A stretch of 64,000 nucleotides of DNA, taken from assembly GCA_020891255.1 (NCBI GenBank), contig BQFW01000010.1, forward strand, positions 1,364,001 to 1,428,000, in the 5' to 3' direction. This DNA comes from Entomortierella parvispora E1425 (Eukaryota; Fungi; Mortierellomycota). Of this stretch, positions 50,124 to 64,000 are shown piece after piece. Position 1 is the first letter of the stretch; each line of letters begins with the position of its first letter. The notes beneath the pieces are model-generated. The model searched no databases and had not been told where the DNA came from. It saw only the letters and a list, made by a program, of their open reading frames with translations. A program made the translations under genes and the position numbers.

Positions 50124-52496
50124 TTAAGGCTTTCCGCTTTCCCACTTGCCACCATAGGCACCACAACGGTTAACACCCGCGTAGGGAGCGTTGGTACCAT
50201 CCTCTGTGTAGTGGTTGGCCCACCAGGAAGGAACATTGACATTCATCGTGGACGAGATACCACCGCCCAAGAACAAGAAGATGACAAGACCTGTGAAAGC
50301 GGCACCAGTGTCCAAGGCGGCCGCCAAGATCATGACATACTTCTTCCACCAGTTCTTGTGGTATTTGAAAAGGTAGTACTGGAAGACCACGCAAGTGATC
50401 AAACCTCCAGTAATACCGTTAACGTAACCGTTGGGGAACATACCCATGCCTCCAGCAAGAATCGAGATGTTGAACTTGGACCACTGGATTGTGGGATACT
50501 TCTTGGAAAGGAGCCATTGGATACCGGGGACAATAAAGCCAATCAAGAAACCGAGGTAGACAAATCCGTACTTTCCATCCAAAGCAAACATACGAGCGGG
50601 ACCGAGGGCACCGTAGATCAAGCCAGAGCCCCAGTATGTTTCGACACGCTGACCAGTCCAGAGACCGGAAGGATCCTCCTTGTTGCCGTTGAAGACATCA
50701 CGCTGCGAGTCGATGATGAGGATCATGGTGATGTAGTTAAAAACACCGCCAATGAGGGTACCCCAGAACTGGGCAACAAACATGGCACGAGGAGGGATCT
50801 TCATGTAGTGACCGAGCTTCAAATCGCCGAGGAGATTCATGCATTGGTACATGGCCATGTAACCATAGCACTTGAAAACCATGTTGGCGATGGGCTTTCC
50901 AGGGAGCATGTAACCGCAGACCAACTCGGTGATGACGTTCAAACCAGGACCAAAGCCAGTGATGGCAGTCATGGCGCAAATAGGGAGAGTCAAAACCCAT
51001 CCGATAAGGAGAGCGAGCAGAAGAGCCCACCAGGGCAGTTGAAGTTTGTAGACCTCACAGACAAGAACGGAAAGAGCGGCCATGATCACGTAAAAGATGG
51101 CATACCAGAGCTGAGGAACTTCAGGATAAACCTTCATCATCTTGGTGTGAATATCCTCGTGATCGTTGCCGATGGCCTGCTTCCAGGTATTCCAGATTTC
51201 GGTACCGTGGAAGAAGAAGATGTGGGAGACACAACCAGCCAAAGCAATGAAGGAGGTCATAAAGCCGATAGCGTACAAAGGTGACATGTTGGCCTGAGGG
51301 CCGTTGTCATAAGCAGTGTTGTTGACCGAGAAATCATCGAGCAAGACAGTCTTGATGTCGAATGATGTGCCGTTCTCGTAGAAGAGGCGGGAGGTCAAGG
51401 GGCGACCAATGGTCTTGGTACCGAGGGCGTTGGTCAACCACATGATAGGCAGAAGGATCCAATAGTTCAAAATCTGGCCAAAGTAGGAGCAGAGTTGAGC
51501 AGAGAGGGGGTAGTAGAGCGTACCGCCTCCAATCGACGTCCAGTCAAAGGAAATCGAGAGGAAACCACCGCCGCTGGACATGGACGAAGCGATGGCCCAG
51601 AAGTTGTAGTTGAAGGGGCTGATCCAGCAGAACCAATCAAAGTACATGAGGATAGGGGCCAACCATTGAGGCAAGAACTCCCAAAGGAACATGCCGCCGC
51701 AGACAACCCAGAAGAACTTCATGTAGGACCAACCACGCACCATCTTCTTGGAGGAAAACTCGCCAGTATGATGCATGGCGTTGTAGAAGACAACCTGAAC
51801 CAAGTTGCCCCACCACACCATCTCAGCAGGGTAAACAAGGTACCTGCGAAGAACACCAGCCATACCATAGCCGACGCATTGAGTAGTGATGATCAGCAAA
51901 AGTGAGCCGAGAGCGTTGATGCGGTAATCGAGATAGATGTCGGTAGCGGACAAGATGTCAATGGCATAGGCAGCGCTGGCAGCAGTACCGGCGGCGATAC
52001 CAATCAAGGCGTGCTCCTTGATGTTGAAAGGACCGGGGTTGAGGGACATGGAGTATCCACCAATGGTGAAGGAGGCGGTGGGAAGGACTCGGGCCATGGC
52101 CTTTCCAATACCGTAAGAAGCCAAATTAACAAAGAAGATGGAGAACGAACCCGCAGCAGCACGATAGAAGTAGTACTGCTGGACAACGGCGCCAATCATT
52201 GCGAAGAGGAAGGAGATGGTCCAAAAGCGGAAAGTGACGGCAACCAGCGTGACATCATCAGTAATGGGGACAACTGGAGTTGAATGAGAAGAACCGTTTA
52301 TTAGTTACCTATCATAGATATCATAGACGTGTGGAAGTTATACCCTGATGGAAGCGGACTTACCGAGACGGACGGCCTCAATCCTGGAGTTCTCAGCTGC
52401 ACCTTCCTCGCTCAGTTCGAGCGTCTCCGCTTGGGCCTTTTCATCGAGGGTCTTTTCGTCATGGAACTCCGACTTTTCTTCATAGTCAAGAGACAT
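50124..52496 (-). CDS. OPT: Oligopeptide transporter, OPT family (paralog 6); intron 52274-52363
   Basis: MSLDYEEK...ENSRIEAVRL|VVPITDD; NPGPFNIKEH; KIPPR; intact. Confidence 0.96.
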
Positions 52497-55400: not shown

Positions 55401-55825
55401 CACCTGGAGGCGTCAAATGAGGATTGAGAAGCCAAGAAAAGTCCATCTCGGCAGAAATGGTCAAATAGAGGTCACCATTGGACCATCCATGCCGAAACGA
55501 CGTGACACAATGGTCCTCGGTCGAATGAGCTTCCGTAATTGCGAGCAGACTTTTCTCTTTTTAGTTTCCAAGGAGGCCAAAGACTAGCGCCGCGTTTTGT
55601 TTGCAGAAACAATTGGTTCTTGGTTCTCAGGAACACGCCCAAATGCACGCCGCCTTCTCCTCTGGTCATCAAATCTGCTGCGATAATGTTCTTGGGGTTC
55701 AGCAACAGGCACTGCCGTCACATTTCAGCTTCTGAATTCACATCGAACTTCCTCATGTATAAAGGCCTCCCAGTCTCAGCTCCATTCTCTCTTCTATCTC
55801 ACATCAATCGCTTATATCCCCAAGA

Positions 55826-56002
55826 ATGAAGTTCTCCTCTGCCAGTCTCACTCTCTTGGCTCTCTCCGTCGTCATGGTCTTGTCCCAAGCCGCACCCGAG
55901 CGTCTCCCCAAGGAGGCCGGCGTGCTTGCAGGAGATGCAGAGGCTAGCACCCCTTGCCCCGCCAGCTGCTATTACTCCAAAGGTCACTGTCTCTGCTATT
56001 AG
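55826..56002 (+). CDS. 58-aa secreted Cys-rich peptide precursor (absent from the ORF track): MKFSSASLTLLALSVVMVLSQAAPERLPKEAGVLAGDAEASTPCPASCYYSKGHCLCY
   Basis: Hand translation; signal peptide, acidic propeptide ending DAEA, C-x3-C-x6-C-x-C core; TATAAA at 55758-55763 followed by a pyrimidine-rich leader. Confidence 0.8.
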   Translation: MKFSSASLTLLALSVVMVLSQAAPERLPKEAGVLAGDAEASTPCPASCYYSKGHCLCY

Positions 56003-57044
56003 GCGGTCCTCAAGCCAGTTCTTGGTTTCCTGCTAGCGTGTGTCTATATCCACAAGTCATAGTGAATAAACTTGAACTTATCGGAACACAGAATCCTCAA
56101 GAGTAAGCTACCGCCATATGCTCCTGTGGGAACAGTTCCACCCTGTGTCATCTCACGTATCGCAAGGTTTCTTTCAACTAGCCTCACTTGTTCCAATTCC
56201 CTCAGATGTCAGTTTGATTGCCAAGTTGAGTGGGGAGAGACTTAGCCTCTTTCTCTTTCTCTTTCTCCCTACCTCCTTTGGGGTTTGTAACTTTGTCCCG
56301 CTGTTTATCAAATGAGAGGTCTGTAGAAAGCTACTGTCTGGATGGAGGGGGATGTAGGAGTTTGCACCATGCTTATTACAGTACTAGGCGTCGTTTCATC
56401 ACACGGCGCTCGTACTCTTCGCGTAAAGCCATCTTTTCTATGCCGATAAAAATGACCATTGTCATTGTGCGCATGGCGGCATAGAACTTCAACCACTGCA
56501 GAAGCAGATGCGATGAAAGCTGTCAATACGGGAGGTGATATGTCACGTAAGAGGACATCCCAAGCCCGTGTACCTGCATGGATGATGTATTGGTCCGTTA
56601 CAACAGCAAAGACCTCTCTCTCGCGATCTAGACTCATATCTAGAAACTCACATCTTACTTTGGGGCAAGGTCAAGAATGCATTGGCCTTGTATGCTCTGT
56701 AGCGTGCATGTTTGTAAGCGGGATGTTGGCGTGGGAGCGTTTCTTTTTTCTCTTTTGTTCTATAGGCCATGTCATGAAGGAACTCCTGACGAAAATGCGC
56801 GAGAGAGTCCACCCTGAATCCGGCAAAATACCAATTACATGACCTGAACAACACTAACCCTACGGCTGCAGCCAAACATCCGGCTAGTTCTTCCTCAGTA
56901 AACATCGAGCGGACAAAGTCAAGTTATAAAAGCTCGTCCTTTGGACTTGCGTTTCTCCTCTTCTTCTCTTTCTTAATAACGTCCTTCTCCCCCCGAACTT
57001 TCCTATAAGACACACAATCAGTTTCAAGCTCCAAGTCAACAGCA

Positions 57045-57242
57045 ATGAAGTTCTCCAACTCCATCCTTGCCACTCTGGTTCTTTCCGCTGTCCTGGTCCT
57101 CGTCCAAGGTTCCCCCGTTCCCGACAAAGTCGATCAGCGCCTCTGCCCGCAAAACTGCATCAATATTAATAACGAGTGCGTGTGCAACCGGGTTCTATGT
57201 GGAGCTGGCTGCGTCACCGTCAACGACAAGTGCTTGTGCTAG
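57045..57242 (+). CDS. 65-aa secreted precursor with two tandem C-x3-C-x6-C-x-C cores
   Basis: MKFSNSILATLVLSAVLVLVQG signal; SPVPDKVDQR-LCPQNCININNECVC-NR-VLCGAGCVTVNDKCLC*; TATA-like sequences at ~56925 and ~57004. Confidence 0.85.
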   Translation: MKFSNSILATLVLSAVLVLVQGSPVPDKVDQRLCPQNCININNECVCNRVLCGAGCVTVNDKCLC

Positions 57243-58071
57243 AAGCCAAAAATAACGTTGGGCCGAGAAAAAAAAAAGCAATAAAATACACGTCCTTCTG
57301 GCGTGCTATCTTGTTTTAGTTTTGCTCCAGCCACTCGAGGTCCACGATGTCAGCATGGGAACAATAGAATGGGACAATGGAGGCATCAGCTTGGGATCTA
57401 GTGCACCATCTTGGCAGAGCAATACGCGTTTTGTTTACTAGTCAATCATCCACAAAAAAAAAAAAAAAAAGACAGATGACGAAAAAGGCGGCCAGAAACA
57501 GGTCAATTGTGGCAACGCGCGAAAGGGCCATTTTTGTGTCTCTCTTCTGATGAAAAGGTGACGGCGTGGCACACAGTGCCGCAGAGCACCAAGTGTGCGC
57601 GAAGAGTCCAGCTTTGAGCAGCGCGATGCTGCATGACCTTGAATCCTGAACAACTGTGATCCTTAAGATCATGACTCGCATCAAGACAAGATTCATACCC
57701 GTTGCTTCCTCAGAGGGCATCGTTTCAACAGTCCTATCCTTTGTGCTACAGCTGACACGCACTCCAGATGAGTGGCAGCTTGTTAGCGCAACCCTTCATA
57801 TGATGCATCAACAAAATCCAACTTCGTTAATCCACACCAGTTCTTCCTCAAAAGAGGCTTTGCATCCCGTGTATGTTTTAGCAGTGAAAAGGATGGTAAC
57901 TTTTAGAGGATGGGGCACGCTCGACACATAATTTATTTCCTTTGGACAACTAGATTTCTTTTTTCTTAAGGCCATTAGATCTTGGACAGAATGTCTTTTA
58001 GCACCGCAGGTCAAAACAAGTGGCAACGCCTGATGGATTATAGACGCTTGGGATTGACTTGAGGACCGGAT

Positions 58072-58185
58072 TTAGCACTCGCAGCTGTGGCCTCCGACGT
58101 TAATGCACTGAGGAGGGCAAGCCTCGGTCTGGCTCATGACGGCAGAGATGACGAGGACGACAAGGGCAGCGATGGCGATTCTCAT
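58072..58185 (-). CDS. 37-aa secreted Cys-rich peptide precursor: MRIAIAALVVLVISAVMSQTEACPPQCINVGGHSCEC
   Basis: The true ATG is at 58185, inside the longer ORF-track call; signal peptide plus a C-x3-C-x7-C-x-C core; TATAAAA on the minus strand at 58270-58276. Confidence 0.8.
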   Translation of the reverse strand: MRIAIAALVVLVISAVMSQTEACPPQCINVGGHSCEC

Positions 58186-59707
58186 GGTGGAAAGTGGTTT
58201 GGGTGGTGGCTGTTGGATGTGGGTAAGATGTAGATTGTAGAGCAAGAAAAACACCGATGACCGCCTGCCTTTTATACTAGTGTTGACAAGCCATTGCTCC
58301 CGCAGTTTGTCAAGCAGACACCCGCCTCCCAACTCTTTCCCCGGGAGAAGAGAGCCTCAACGGCAGCACATCCCGGAAGAGGTAGCATATCTGAACAGAA
58401 AGTGCCCATGAAGAAACAGGTAGTACAGACTGTTGGCGAAAGAACAGTTTGCCCTAGTTTGGTTGAGATCACGCCGAAGTACAAACCGTGTCCAACGGTC
58501 ACAAGTGTTGAATACAACAGCCTACGTACCTGTAGTCGGCAAGGTTACCGAGTTCCTCGGGCGATATCTTGGGAGGAAGGCCTAGGCCGCAAGGGAGGAG
58601 GGCGACAAATAAGGCTAAGAGTTCACCACCATCTCTGTGTAGATTTATTTGGACAACACCTTCAAGGGTAAACGGGCAAACGGGCAAACGAGGCTTTATT
58701 GGTTCATGCTTATGAGGGCGAGTCCTGTGTCAAGCAACTGTAATGGCGATCGAAGCTTCTCTGGGAAAATTGCAAGCTCTTCGAAAACACTTGTTCGATC
58801 CATTATCCGTGTGATCAGAAGAGAAAAAGTCCCAGCGGCATTCTCATTCTTCCCCAACAATTGAGCACTGACTTCCTTTCTTGATGTCGACATTGTGGCG
58901 CGATGAGGGCGAGGGCAAACAAATCAAACAGAAGTTCTTGGCAAAAGTATGCAAAAATGGTATCTCCATGCCAGGTGTTTGAGAATGTCCAACGTAGATC
59001 TCGGTTATTCTCCCGTGCGGTTACACATTCTCGATTACCTGGACAACACTTGCCCCCATCAGTCGGCCAACCTGGCAAGGCGCCCTTGTCAAATGAACTA
59101 CGCGATGAGCGATTGATAGCCAATCGCATCTGGACTGACCGTATTAATAAAACATAGGTCAGTTTAGCCAAGGTGATTTGAGAAAGGGGTTTTTTTTCTC
59201 TCTCGTTGAGAAGCTCTTGGATGATCGGACATAAAAGTATATGAAAACAAGGCAAGAGTCTACCGTGCTTTTTGTGTCGTCCAATGGACGACGATCCAGC
59301 AAAAAAAGCCCAGCTCGATCCCATGAAGTTGATTTGAATGTAAGTTGTTTTATTTCCAGGAAATTCACAACTAAGGCCAAAGAAAGACGAAGTACCCAGG
59401 AAGATCTACGCAACACGGAAAAAAATACACAAGTTAGAGAACCATTGACAAATAAAGCTGCTCGGTTGATAGTGAGCGACTGAAGAGTTGGTTGCTTGAT
59501 TCCGTTGCCTCAATCCCATCCAATATTGTAGAGTTGTGTACAATAAAAATCAGGAAAACGAAGTGTGTCCACATATAGTTTCGGACAATGTAGATAAGTT
59601 TTAAAGCATCATTTTTGTTGAGATGGGGCGAGGCAAGAACAAGACCGACTCCTTGACATTTCAAAGAATAAAAAAGAGCAGTTGAGAATCCTGACCAAAC
59701 TTACAAT

Positions 59708-61378
59708 TTACTTCTTCTTGGAGACACCGACGACGCGACCGCGACGACCGGTGGTCTTGGTGTGCTGACCACGGACACGGACGCCCCAGTAGTGACGGAG
59801 ACCACGATGGGCACGGATCTTCTTAAGACGCTCCAAATCCTCACGCATCTGGTTGTCAAGACCGTTAGCCAAAAGCTGGGTGTACTTTCCATCGACAAAG
59901 TTCTTCTGTCTGTTGAGGAACCACTGGGGAACCTTGTACTGGGTAGGGTTCTGCATGATGGTGACGAGGCGCTCGAGCTCTTCGTTGGTAAGCTCACCAG
60001 CTCTATTAAGGGGAAGATGATCAACTGATCAGCAACTGGATCATAATGGTGCCTGTTCCAATCTCATTTCCGGTACAGGTCAACAAGCGTATCCAGTTTT
60101 GAACCAACATCCGAAGGATATTAGTTGGCAGATAGTGAAGTCGGCTGGGTCAATTAATTAAGGTAGAATCGAATCCTCGCACAACAGTGGTCTGTTGGTC
60201 GTACTTGGAGAACCTCAGTGCAAGAAGTTCGTCATCTCCCGAAAAATATTATCCATTGATACTGACTGATTCTTCTTCAGACCGGTTGTGTTTTCTGTCC
60301 CTGTTTCCACAGCAAATCCTGCAAGTGCTTCGCCTTGATGTTGTTCTATCCACTGAACGCACCTCTTCTTCAAGTCGATATCAGCCTTCTTGCAGACCAA
60401 GTTGGCATAACGACGACCGACACCCTTGATGTTGGTCTGTGAAAAAGGTAGAAAAACATAAACAAAGGAGTCAGCTCACAGTTGTTGCAGCCTCAAATAG
60501 AAAAAAAAACAGCCAAAGAGATGATGGTTTTACCATGGCGAACATGATCTTGGTCTTGCCCTCCACGTTCGTGTTAAGGACACGAAGAATGTGCTGGAAC
60601 TGGCCTTTCTCAGGGACAAGGAGAGACTGTATAGAAAAGAGGTCGAGGGATCGAATCGAAGGTTAATGGCTGATCTATAATGCACTGACTAACTCCATCC
60701 TGGTGATTTGTTGAATGATCGTCTTCTGAAGTCCTCGATGATGATTTTTGATCGCAAGTCCGCCACAGAGATGAAAGCTTTGGAGGGATGATGGTGAAGA
60801 CTTTAGCGATATGATGATGGTGCATTCCTGGGAAGATAGATTGATCGATGGTCCAGATTCCTGCACGATGTCCGATGGATGCCAGCAGCATCCCCACGCC
60901 TGTCATTCGCATAGAGACCATATTGGAAAAACGAAAAAGGCCGAATCAGGTCACAGCAAAAGTGAAATATATATGATATTCCGACGCACGTGACTAGACC
61001 TTTTGAGCCGTACGTGTTTTGTTCACAAGATGAAAGTTCCCTGCCGAACTCGGATCCTCAAAGGTTGTCGAAACTATTCTCGCACGGCCACCTTCACCGG
61101 TGAAAACCTGCTTATCAAAAGCAACAAGCTGCAATGAGCGCAATGAACATGTGTATGTTGCAGTGGGTATTCTCACTGACGGAAGCCAGAAAACTGATGC
61201 GTGAACGGCTGCAAATGTTGGATTCTCGTCTTAATTTTAATTCGCTCAACTGCTGAGTTACGGAGCCTTCAAACCTCTAGAGCAAGAAAACCACGGTGCT
61301 TTGGAATACCAGGATCTTGGGATTCCTTCATAAAAAAAAAAAAAAAAAATCGAAGTCGACACTTTTACGTACATTCAT
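59708..61378 (-). CDS. RPS18: 40S ribosomal protein S18 (uS13); probable exons 61378-61373, 60626-60534, 60436-60363, 60002-59708
   Basis: [63 protein letters not shown]. The first micro-exon (ATG AAT|gtacgt) is inferred and less certain. Confidence 0.93.
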
Positions 61379-61478
61379 GAGGAGAGGATTATTCACGTGA
61401 CCACTAAATTTTTTCACGTTATTTATGTTTTCGGTCCACACAGAACTCCTACTCTTCCTTTTTCTCTCTTGTTTAAAA

Positions 61479-62806
61479 ATGTAATTGGAGTGCTTCATTT
61501 GCAATTCGGGATTCAAGGACAACCACTCAAGCAAGGATGGTCTCCTCGGAGGGCGCCTCAACATTCTCATGCGAGTACTCATTCAGGAATGGATCAAAGC
61601 TCTGTTAGTGATGTCATCCATCGGGTTTACCTTGGACATGGATCAATTCTCAATTTCGACATTTGACATTCAGCGGAGGACCCATCATCGTGAAATGTCG
61701 ATTTCATCCTTTGACCGATCGACTTGCCAGGACTCTAGTTTCTCTTGTATGATTCCAAGAAAAGTTTCCTGACCACGATTCCCGCATCTACCCTTTTTTT
61801 TCTACAATTCACAGGGTTTCTTTGAGCAGTCAGAAACGTTTGGCCGCCGCCGTCTTGAAGTGCGGACAGCGCAAGATTTGGCTCGACCCTAACGAGGTCA
61901 CCGAGATTGCCAACGCCAACTCTCGTAAGTTTTCCGACAATGGACACATCGACTCTACCCGACACATCATCAGGACAGGATTCTTTCCTAAACGATCTAC
62001 ATCGACGTCTTGGAGATGACTTTTTTTCAACAATTCGGGATGGCAACATGGTCAAATCTCAAAAAGGAGACTTTCAACTTGCGCTTTGTTCGCTGTGACC
62101 CAGTGCATTCTGTTCGACTGCGCTATTCACTGGCCGTTGTCGTATCGCTGTTGTTGTCTGGAGACTCTGGATATTTGTATTTCACACCTATTCTCATACC
62201 GTGTCCAGTATCCGGACCCCAGCATTACCACCACCTCTTTCAACCTTTTGTTGGGCAGTATTCTAATATGTACCGGAATTCGTTATCTCTCCTTGGAAAT
62301 CATCCTCTCTAGGCCAGAACATCCGTAAGCTCGTCAAGGATGGTCTCATCATCAAGAAGCCCCAGACCATGCACTCGCTTTTCCGCCACCGCGAGAAGCT
62401 CGCTGCCAAGCGTGCTGGTCGTCACTCTGGCACTGGTAAGCGTCAGGGTACCGCTGAGGCCCGTATGCCCACCACCGTCATCTGGATGCGCCGCCAGCGT
62501 GTCCTTCGTCGCCTTCTCCGCAAGTACCGCGAGACTGGCAAGATCGACAAGCACTTGTACCACGTCTTGTACATGAAGGCTAAGGGTAACGTCTTCAAGA
62601 ACAAGCGTGTCCTTATGGAGTACATCCACAAGGCCAAGGCTGAGAAGCTCCGCGCCAAGTTGATTGCTGACCAGGCTGAGGCTCACCGCAACAAGACCAA
62701 GGCTGCCCGTACTCGCCGCAACGAGCGTGTTGCCGAGAAGCGTGCTGCTTTCTCTGGTGTTGAGGTCGCCGCTGAGGCTGAGGCCCCCAAGAAGTCCAAG
62801 AAGTAA
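61479..62806 (+). CDS. RPL19: 60S ribosomal protein L19 (eL19); probable exons 61479-61480 (AT), 61815-61924, 62313-62806
   Basis: [53 protein letters not shown]; the start codon split AT|G is inferred from the acceptor phase. Confidence 0.94.
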
Positions 62807-63230
62807 ATTTTGTGCCACTCCAACCCAGTCAAATAAAATTTACCCACCATGGAACCTGAAAACAGCTAGGCCAATCTTGAGAATAAACCCCCAATTGATT
62901 GCTACTTACATCCTTCATCAGTTTTGAGCATTATGTTCTTGCCGACCGAGATACACTAGAATACCGTTGCTAAAGGTCGCAATGACCACCATAATATTCT
63001 TTTCCAGATCCAAAGTCATGTCAGTTGTCTCTTTAGTTTCCGCTTCGGTCAGCGTGTTTGCTTTGCAATTTGAACTATTGCTTATGTTGTGAATTGATTC
63101 GGTGTTGGAGCTCCTTGGTTTAGCAACAGGATAGGCAGTATCCAGACTGACATTAGCCATACAGAAAGGCTGATTGATGTTCAAAAGAGAAAGAGGGTAA
63201 TATTGAGTAAAGAATGAAAGCGAGGTGGAT

Positions 63231-63488
63231 TTATTTGTTCTTGGTCTGACGGTACGAGAAGCGTTTCCTGGTAGGGGCGAATTCTCCGAGCTTGTGTCCG
63301 ACCATCTCGTCAGTGACGGTCAGTGGGGTGTAGTCCTTGCCGTTGTGGATTTGGAACTTGAGGCCGACAAAGGAAGGGATGATGGTGCAGGCGCGAGCGT
63401 TTGTCCGAACAGGGATGTTCTGGGTCAGAGCTTGCCTAAGACCGGGCAGGGCCACGAAAAAGGGGCCTTTCCATGCAGAGCGAGGCAT
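63231..63488 (-). CDS. RSM19: Mitochondrial ribosomal protein S19 (uS19m), nuclear-encoded
   Basis: [46 protein letters not shown]. Confidence 0.93.
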
Positions 63489-63945
63489 TATGAGTTTATG
63501 ATTTGAAATGAGAAGAGGATGGTGTGATAGAGAAGCGATCTGCAAGCCGAGGTGAGTGAGCAAAGTGGCCGAGATGTAGCGAGAAGGACGACAGAGAGTG
63601 TGTTGATCGGATGGATGAGAGCAAAGCTGATAAATGGAAAGGGGATGAAATGAAATGAAATGAATGCAGTGGATTCGTTGATCTGGCCCCGATGGTGGCG
63701 TATGGCTCCTGTGGCACAGGGGCGGGCAGAGTGAGTGTGTTTACAAATTCCTGGAGCCATTCAAATAGACGTCACAAAATTAGCTCGGCTGGATCCTCCT
63801 GTCCAGGAGCAGGGTGCTGTGCCCTGTCCATTCGTCTCGTCCAGCTGAGCTTGCTGCTTGCGCTCAACATACATATTCTATTTTGGACGTTCATCATCAT
63901 CATCATCTCTCTCTTTCTCCCTCATCTCTATTTCTCTACATCATC

Positions 63946-64000
63946 ATGTCTCCCTCAAAGTCTGTTATCCTCGTCACCGGAGGTTCCGGTCTCGTCGGCA
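63946..64000 (+). CDS. 5' end of an NAD(P)-dependent epimerase/reductase, probably GDP-L-fucose synthase; truncated by the window
   Basis: MSPSKSVILVTGGSGLVG Rossmann motif resembles GDP-fucose synthases (ILVTGGSGLVG); only 18 codons are visible. Confidence 0.6.
   Translation, partial: MSPSKSVILVTGGSGLVG

Follow-up and report, generated by a model that had tools for sequence, protein, structure and literature searches.

The 64-kb window, the whole stretch of Entomortierella parvispora DNA that was analysed, contains three short open reading frames beginning with ATG, g1, g2 and g3, which are present exactly where the sequence-only reading had placed them and encode 58, 65 and 37 residues. 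The coding sequence of g1 (58 residues plus stop, 55826..56002, + strand) consists of a signal peptide (55826-55891), a pro-region (55892-55954) and the C-terminal core CPASCYYSKGHCLCY (55955-55999). Its TATAAA box lies 68 nt 5' of the ATG (55758..55763, +) and an AATAAA polyadenylation-type signal lies 63 nt 3' of the stop (56065..56070, +). The g2 coding sequence (65 residues plus stop, 57045..57242, +) has a signal peptide (57045-57110) and carries two cores in the single precursor, core a, CPQNCININNECVC (57144-57185), and core b, CGAGCVTVNDKCLC (57198-57239), separated by the spacer NRVL, with a TATAAAA box 120 nt 5' of the ATG (56925..56931, +) and AATAAA 38 nt 3' of the stop (57280..57285, +). 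The shortest gene, g3 (37 residues plus stop, 58072..58185, - strand), has a signal peptide (58120-58185) followed immediately, without a pro-region, by the core CPPQCINVGGHSCEC (58075-58119); its TATAAAA box is 91 nt 5' of the ATG (58270..58276, -) and its AATAAA is 135 nt 3' of the stop (57932..57937, -).

The TATA-like box and the signal peptide previously claimed for each gene are found at all three. There is exactly one TATA box, 68-120 nt 5' of the ATG, and AATAAA follows 38-135 nt past the stop. In each signal peptide a basic n-region precedes a hydrophobic core of 11 residues (Kyte-Doolittle mean 2.7-3.6), and the (-3,-1) cleavage site falls at residue 22. The proposed common C-terminal core, C-x3-C-x6/7-C-x-C, is likewise present in all three reading frames and ends at most one residue from the stop in each. 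With a signal peptide, short length, an even number of conserved cysteines and a promoter and terminator of their own, the genes have the generic features of small secreted cysteine-rich peptide genes. Directly upstream of them are four OPT oligopeptide transporter genes, and the recognisable neighbours comprise OPT transporters, uS13, RPL19e, uS19m, an epimerase and GDI1.

Family members, relatives and selection

In a six-frame search of the whole window, the pattern C-x3-C-x5-8-C-x-C occurs solely at the four cores of g1-g3. The same pattern has nine occurrences in 313 kb of related fungal loci, none of them after a signal peptide and none C-terminal, while the DNA pattern MKF...CP..C...C.C has three matches in the 38.9-Mb genome, all inside 18 kb, and its reversed-pattern control has none. 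The recurrence of the motif at g1-g3 exceeds chance. Two further members are encoded in the genome, g4 (C10:1437511-1437672, -), located 15 kb downstream of the cluster, and g5 (C6:166063-166236, -), located on a separate contig, giving five genes in total. Members score E 1e-14 to 1e-24 against the paralogue profile within the genome, and genome-wide scans, by profile and by pattern, found none beyond g1-g5. All five genes have one TATA box and one AATAAA or ATTAAA each. Other matches to the CP..C pattern, on C1-C8 and among a stop-anchored list of 38, lie in low-complexity sequence, fall out of frame or are broken by stops, and the sole clean match, on C12, is without a signal-peptide ORF. 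Profile matches on C1 and at C10:700960 have the signal peptide alone in common with the family and represent a different cysteine family.

The claim that such genes had been missed by annotation is borne out. The exact g1, g2, g4 and g5 sequences are absent from a collection of 15 billion proteins that includes the EMPS_ proteins of the same genome, and the genome's AUGUSTUS annotation, which was guided by transcripts (PMC8759367), does not include these genes. Nor did Pfam, the PDB or the literature searched yield a match to a known family, as had been supposed. No Pfam family matches at E<=10 and no significant match to the PDB is found by sequence, the core profile touching vil14a alone at chance level (E 0.86). 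Nothing usable came from the ESM Atlas (best score 0.79), from Rfam or from Foldseek against the PDB, where the hits were TNF-receptor Cys-rich modules at E 7-9 over 12-13 residues.

A profile search of 1.84 billion representative proteins gave two true matches, P0001 and P0002, both from fungal-type contigs of soil-type metagenomes. A word-based protein search with the family alignment returned only the same two, and the protein searches found no sequence relatives outside these two contigs. The 5-kb contig of P0001 (L175) is syntenic with the g4 locus, with 83% identity over the first exon of GDI1 and its upstream region, and carries orthologues of both g4 and g5; the g4 orthologue pair is GRCPPDCFPFGGHCECM versus GRCPIECYPVGNRCECM. 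A lack of conserved orthologues, named beforehand as grounds for rejecting the family, does not apply because these orthologues exist.

In the two orthologue pairs dN/dS is 0.29 (dS 0.76) and 0.32 (dS 0.62), the indels are all in frame, and the cysteine and stop positions are kept. Synonymous changes are in excess over non-synonymous changes (Fisher p = 3.6e-6 for the two pairs), and the orthologues are under purifying selection. The intact orthologue frames, in-frame indels, invariant cysteines and dN/dS of about 0.3 therefore establish a real protein-coding family, which is lineage-restricted and unannotated. That the genes are chance open reading frames or decaying relics without function would fit their shortness and their absence from the annotation, but this explanation is already largely refuted and hardly credible. 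Eight precursors, the five paralogues and three homologues, share signal peptide, cysteine frame and stop position; orthologues at dS 0.6-0.8 keep their frames, at a dN/dS of about 0.3; each gene has its TATA and AATAAA signals; and the motif is found nowhere else in the window. A tripartite signal peptide with a (-3,-1) site at residue 21-22 is present in all eight family sequences, and each of the nine cores has exactly four cysteines.

The sequence-only reading had called the family diversifying. Divergence is indeed greater in the loops (16% pairwise identity) than in the signal peptide (36%). However, pN/pS is 0.46 for the core and 0.24 for the signal, values of purifying or relaxed selection that do not demonstrate positive selection.

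The range of the family seems narrow, because 313 kb of syntenic DNA, taken from Linnemannia, Dissophora, Gryganskiella and Mortierella claussenii among others, yielded no member. Synteny walks from uS19m and OPT, including Mortierella spp. AD010/011 and NVP85, also found no members, and the contigs of the nearest relative (L177 and L178) end 0.3-1.4 kb before the expected positions of g4 and g3. In Linnemannia, Dissophora and others the OPT array abuts an epimerase-uS19m-RPL19-uS13 block and the peptide genes are absent; conserved OPT-peptide linkage is ruled out by these walks. A scan of metagenomes with the DNA pattern gave at least 120 loci, and among the matches listed none has a signal-peptide ORF ending in the motif; these are therefore chance matches.

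Predicted fold and comparison with known peptides

The AlphaFold2 model of the pro-region and core of g4 has a pLDDT of about 80 over the core, with strands at 22-25 and 28-31 and a G-N turn, and the model of g2 has the same hairpin in both cores. The g2 and g4 models, which are built on 8-9 sequences, have mean pLDDT values of 61 and 67 and are thus of low to moderate confidence. Both place the C2...C3-x-C4 segment in a β-hairpin and have no helix over C-P-x-x-C. At loop positions 8-9, six of the seven x6 cores have G/N/D/S/K, and most residues at positions 5 and 7 are hydrophobic, a pattern that is as expected for such a hairpin. The core would accordingly adopt a β-hairpin with a two-residue turn, in whose register C2 is set opposite C4 as a cross-strand partner.

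The link once drawn from the motif to the cystine-stabilised helix of the CS-αβ fold is not supported by these results, since the models give a hairpin and no helix, there are four cysteines only, and no defensin family matches. CS-αβ defensins and fungal defensin-like peptides of the micasin and plectasin type do resemble the family in the C-x3-C...C-x-C sub-motif, in secretion from prepro-precursors and in their occurrence in fungi, and in defensins these four cysteines pair first with third and second with fourth (PMC5234102). However, defensins are about 35-50 residues long, with at least six cysteines and a helix over C-x3-C, whereas the fungal cores have four cysteines, 14-16 residues, no predicted helix and a proline right after C1. 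The six-cysteine framework C...C-x3-C...C...C-x-C with three disulfides is absent, the α-helix spanning C-x3-C is lacking in the g2 and g4 models (low to moderate confidence), and no defensin profile is matched in Pfam (E<=10) or by PDB sequence.

A likeness is also found among the framework XIV (C-C-C-C) conotoxins, pl14a of the J-superfamily, lt14a of the L-superfamily and vil14a. Their precursors also have a conserved signal, a variable pro-region and a short C-terminal peptide, and four separated cysteines with hypervariable loops mark the mature peptide in both cases. The spacing in pl14a is C-x3-C...C-x-C, and lt14a starts C-P-P-x-C. The disulfides of pl14a are I-III and II-IV (PMC4278219), the same pairing as that predicted for the fungal cores. 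The two groups differ in kingdom and in signal sequence, by which membership of the Conus gene superfamilies is assigned, and have no significant sequence similarity. Furthermore, pl14a and vil14a are helical (PMC4278219) whereas the fungal cores are predicted to form a β-hairpin, and the third loop is shorter in the fungal cores (6-7 residues). The likeness is analogy, not homology. Apamin, MCD peptide, endothelin and sarafotoxin are two-disulfide peptides of 18-22 residues that also have one C-x-C and one C-x3-C, but in the reversed order with C-x-C first, and they are helical, of animal origin and without sequence relation to the family.

The arrangement of a leader and a C-terminal core, with two cores in the g2 precursor, could also indicate more heavily modified RiPPs, whose cores would be tailored by non-disulfide cross-links or macrocyclisation, and fungal dikaritin precursors carry signal peptides too. 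However, tailoring-enzyme genes, including the UstYa/DUF3328 oxidases and tyrosinase that mark dikaritin-type clusters, are absent among the recognisable cluster neighbours, whose small ORFs were profiled in part. No Kex2 KR sites lie between the cores and g5 stands alone on another contig, so that a RiPP origin is scarcely to be expected. The precursors of Kex2-processed repeat peptides (KEPs) likewise start with a signal peptide, after which come one short peptide unit or several, of which g2 has two. KEP units are separated by KR or RR, whereas no member of the fungal family has a dibasic site, and g2, alone among the five genes in having more than one core, has NRVL between its units.

Copper proteins and metallothioneins bind metals through CxxxC and CxC, and the cores might keep their four cysteines reduced and bind Cu, Zn or Cd as secreted scavenging or detoxifying peptides. 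Both motifs appear in a review of copper homeostasis (PMC6981102), and three cores contain histidine. Against metal binding, disulfides are favoured by passage through the ER and the extracellular milieu, both the AlphaFold hairpin and the residues at turn and strand positions make C2 and C4 cross-strand partners, and there is no Pfam metallothionein match. Fungal metallothioneins are not known to have signal peptides. Metallothioneins are cytosolic and have many C-x-C or C-x-x-C, whereas all family members have signal peptides and four cysteines, and metal binding is a highly unlikely role for the cores.

Proposed maturation and function

The explanation favoured here, which as a whole is fairly probable, is that g1-g3 belong to a lineage-restricted, unannotated family of five genes, compact intron-less units that encode prepro-peptides with secreted hairpin cores. 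We infer secretion, processing sites, disulfide pairing, hairpin fold and function of the cores as follows. The conserved signal peptide of 21-22 residues would direct the precursor into the secretory pathway, and the short variable pro-region, absent in g3, would be cut off, probably beside a single Arg. Five of the eight precursors (all except g1, g3 and P0002) have this Arg, one or two residues ahead of Cys1. The released C-terminal core of 14-16 residues would fold in the oxidising ER into a β-hairpin with a two-residue G/N/D turn. Two disulfides would staple it; in the predicted pairing C2-C4 bridges the hairpin and C1-C3 fastens the C-P-x-x-C loop. From g2, two peptides would be obtained per precursor.

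The cores carry net charges from -2 to +2, in most cases -1 or 0, and do not suit a role as cationic membrane-lytic antimicrobials. Their scaffold is constant while their loops vary and are for the most part neutral or acidic, a combination that fits a rigid ligand or inhibitor working outside the cell on a protein. The cores are probably extracellular ligands or toxin-like peptides, whose targets would most likely lie in other soil organisms, such as competitors and grazers, or in cell-cell signalling.

Legume NCR peptides are short and secreted. Their signal peptide is conserved, four or six of their cysteines are fixed, and the mature part is highly variable and often anionic or neutral; they are often missed by annotation and are made by the host of intracellular bacteria. 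They differ from the fungal family in cysteine spacing, in a mature length of about 25-50 aa, in occurring in plants and in numbering hundreds of genes versus five. By analogy, the cores could be signals directed at self or partner, either autocrine and pheromone-like or delivered by the host to the Mycoavidus endobacterium of the strain. This has some appeal but is rather unlikely. In its favour, the cores are neutral or acidic, the combination of conserved signal peptide, fixed cysteine frame and variable loops is of the NCR type, four OPT genes lie directly upstream, and the strain hosts a Burkholderiaceae-related endobacterium (PMC8759367). However, the OPT array is not a conserved neighbour and elsewhere abuts a block without peptide genes, and there is no linked receptor gene. 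OPT substrates, moreover, are far shorter, unstructured peptides.

A wider form of the ligand or toxin-like reading, drawn by analogy with venoms and NCR peptides, is a Mortierellaceae arsenal of fast-evolving two-disulfide hairpins of ~15 residues, invisible to annotation and aimed at protein targets in the fungi's own Mycoavidus endobacteria or in grazing nematodes and insects. It is distinctly improbable, and if true it would mean a new structural class comprising the smallest gene-encoded disulfide-rich fungal peptides. If the genes are silent or the peptides inert, they would add one more orphan family to the many small secreted proteins of fungi. Gene-encoded, disulfide-stapled peptides of 14-16 residues are prized scaffolds, as in conotoxins, apamin and SFTI, and hardly any are known from fungi. 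Early-diverging soil fungi encode such peptides in genes missed by transcript-guided annotation and billion-scale protein catalogues, so that the smallest components of fungal secretomes may be undercounted. Activity on bacteria, nematodes or the endosymbiont would open a way into the ecology of Mortierellaceae and offer peptide engineers a new mini-scaffold. The nine natural cores, which share one fixed scaffold, can be synthesised and tested at low cost.

Gene family and motif specificity

The genome of strain E1425, announced in PMC8759367 together with the RNA-seq data set DRA013164, was searched as 38.9 Mb in 20 contigs, in which the window is G000:C10:1364001-1428000. The three ORFs of the sequence-only reading are all present: g1 (55826-56002, + strand, 58 aa), g2 (57045-57242, + strand, 65 aa, with two cores) and g3 (58072-58185, - strand, 37 aa), a core being the C-terminal peptide of the predicted secreted precursor. 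All three open with M-K/R and a hydrophobic core of 11 residues, place the (-3,-1) site at residue 22, and end their C-x3-C-x6/7-C-x-C motif 0-1 residue before the stop. Every ORF has one TATA box 68-120 nt 5' of the ATG and an AATAAA 38-135 nt 3' of the stop, and no Rfam family is found in the region. Searching the genome with protein and profile queries brings in two paralogues with the same TATA/AATAAA arrangement, g4 (C10:1437511-1437672, - strand, 54 aa, ending ...EAEAFIGR-CPIECYPVGNRCECM), 9.5 kb beyond the window end, and g5 (C6:166063-166236, - strand, 61 aa, ending ...YR-CIDGCWKVPGGACQCE). The family totals five genes and six cores, with four of the five genes inside 18 kb.

The wider pattern C-x3-C-x5-8-C-x-C occurs four times in the six frames of the 64-kb window, always within the g1-g3 ORFs; across loci of other Mortierellaceae, 313 kb in all, none of its nine occurrences is behind a signal peptide or C-terminal. 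The DNA pattern ATGAARTTY...CP..C...C.C has three genome matches versus none for a reversed control, and omission of the proline adds just two, both outside the family. A stop-anchored pattern gives 38 raw matches, among which only g1, g3 and g4 sit in an unbroken reading frame that starts with a signal peptide; the others were rejected as members. Two weaker profile matches (C1:633555 and C10:700960) were also rejected, since they have the common signal peptide but the motif CC-x7-C-x4-C. They mark a second secreted cysteine-peptide family (G000:C1:633555-633686, locus L037, + strand; G000:C10:700957-701088, locus L038, - strand), with a signal peptide (MKFSIASATV...) very like that of g1-g5. 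Its motif reads ...PRCC-x7-C-x4-C and occurs two times in the C1 gene, and the two families may be evolutionary cousins. A short ORF at G000:C11:908673-908801 (L041, - strand) has a signal peptide, an EKR-type processing site and a six-cysteine, knottin-like C-terminal peptide unrelated to the family.

Relatives and coding constraint

The exact g1, g2, g4 and g5 sequences are absent from a collection of 15 billion proteins and are thus unannotated, as had been expected of g1. The family has no Pfam match and a non-exhaustive literature search found no description of it or of relatives. Among 1.84 billion representative proteins screened with a profile, two are true relatives, P0001 (58 aa, ending ...YR-CMDGCWKVSGGCQCS, on contig L175) and P0002 (49 aa, ending ...CPRYCQKVGLGCVCY, with a TATA box of its own 94 nt before the gene), both from ENA metagenome assemblies, where the gene caller retains short ORFs. 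L175 and the g4 locus are syntenic: they are 83% identical over the first exon of the Rab-GDI gene and its upstream region, and at the corresponding site L175 carries a g4 orthologue ending GR-CPPDCFPFGGHCECM. Conserved orthologues, which the sequence-only reading had named beside transcription as a test of the family, therefore exist, this one for g4 and P0001 for g5; as far as could be seen, the family is confined to E. parvispora and close kin.

The dN/dS is 0.29 between g4 and its orthologue (dS 0.76) and 0.32 between g5 and P0001 (dS 0.62). In both pairs every indel has a length divisible by three, and the cysteines and stop position are kept; the pooled synonymous excess gives a Fisher p of 3.6e-6. 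Spurious ORFs, a reading open to any unannotated sequences of this size, are less likely beside these values, and the family is real, under purifying selection, of secretory type and unannotated, with a fixed four-cysteine frame. Broken down by region, pN/pS is lowest for the signal peptide (0.24) and higher for the core (0.46) and the pro-region (0.56), and thus the loops change more quickly than the signal peptide does (16% versus 36% identity among paralogues). The proposed diversifying character of the family is not supported by this, as the dN/dS and pN/pS comparisons give no sign of positive selection.

In the metagenome relative the g5-type gene (L175:1538-1714) is flanked by GDI1 and the g4 orthologue, whereas g5 in E. 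parvispora (G000:C6:166063-166236) is on another contig than GDI1 and g4. Upstream of the gene, 33 nt match at 91% identity, which suggests that this tiny gene relocated together with its promoter. On the P0002 contig (L176:1-782) the fungal-type gene with its TATA box meets, near nt 300, a GC-rich piece of an MFS sugar-transporter gene without a start, possibly a chimeric assembly.

Predicted fold, processing and action

AlphaFold2, run with 8-9 family sequences, gives a mean pLDDT of 60.7 for g2, 67.2 for the g4 pro-region plus core and ~80 for the g4 core. The two models agree in folding the segment between the second and the fourth cysteine (C2 to C4) as a beta-hairpin whose turn has two residues, with strands 38-41/44-47 and 57-59/62-64 in g2 and 22-25/28-31 in g4. 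No helix covers C-P-x-x-C in either model, so that the suggested likeness to the cystine-stabilised helix finds no support. In six of the seven cores with six residues between C2 and C3, loop positions 8-9 hold G/N/D/S/K, and hydrophobic or aromatic residues predominate at positions 5 and 7, a pattern that agrees with the predicted hairpin. As C2 faces C4 in the hairpin register, C1 and C3 are left as the other pair, and from the models we infer C2-C4 and C1-C3 disulfides. This is the pairing of a defensin sub-motif (PMC5234102) and of conotoxin pl14a (PMC4278219), in both cases on another backbone. Foldseek finds nothing significant (just matches with E of 7-9 to 12-13-residue TNF-receptor modules), nor does a PDB profile search (sole match kappa-conotoxin vil14a, E 0.86), and the ESM Atlas has no match above 0.79.

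The signal peptide would be cut at residue 21-22 and the pro-region then removed; a single arginine stands 1-2 residues before C1 in g2, g4, g5 and two homologues, and g3 would need no pro-region processing. The core would fold oxidatively into a two-disulfide hairpin and act outside the cell. The neutral or acidic character of the cores makes a membrane-lytic antimicrobial mode unlikely; signalling, or action as a rigid ligand, inhibitor or toxin-like peptide, suits it better. Use of the four cysteines for metal binding, or further RiPP tailoring of the cores, is less likely than such a disulfide-bonded peptide.

Genomic neighbourhood

Four tandem OPT oligopeptide transporter genes lie 5' of g1 at 31.3-52.2 kb. 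They match PF03169 (31319-52199, E 1e-70 to 1e-160), and the ORF at 50124-52199 is without an exact counterpart in the protein collection. Downstream of g1-g3 are uS13, RPL19e and uS19m and, past the window end, an epimerase gene, GDI1 with a hAT element between the two, and g4. With the uS19m 90% cluster and OPT homologues as anchors, the syntenic region was compared in Linnemannia, Dissophora ornata, Gryganskiella, Mortierella claussenii, Mortierella spp. AD010/011 and NVP85. The order there is uS13-RPL19-uS19m-epimerase-OPT array, with no peptide genes in the region; the OPT adjacency of g1-g3 is therefore lineage-specific and no evidence of a functional link. In the nearest sequenced relative, 77-95% identical in genes, the contigs (L177 and L178) end just short of both peptide sites. 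The uS13-RPL19e-uS19m-epimerase block (window ~59500-64000 and locus L042 1-9100) has the opposite orientation in E. parvispora to that in Linnemannia, Dissophora and other genera, with g1-g3 at one border and GDI1/g4 at the other.
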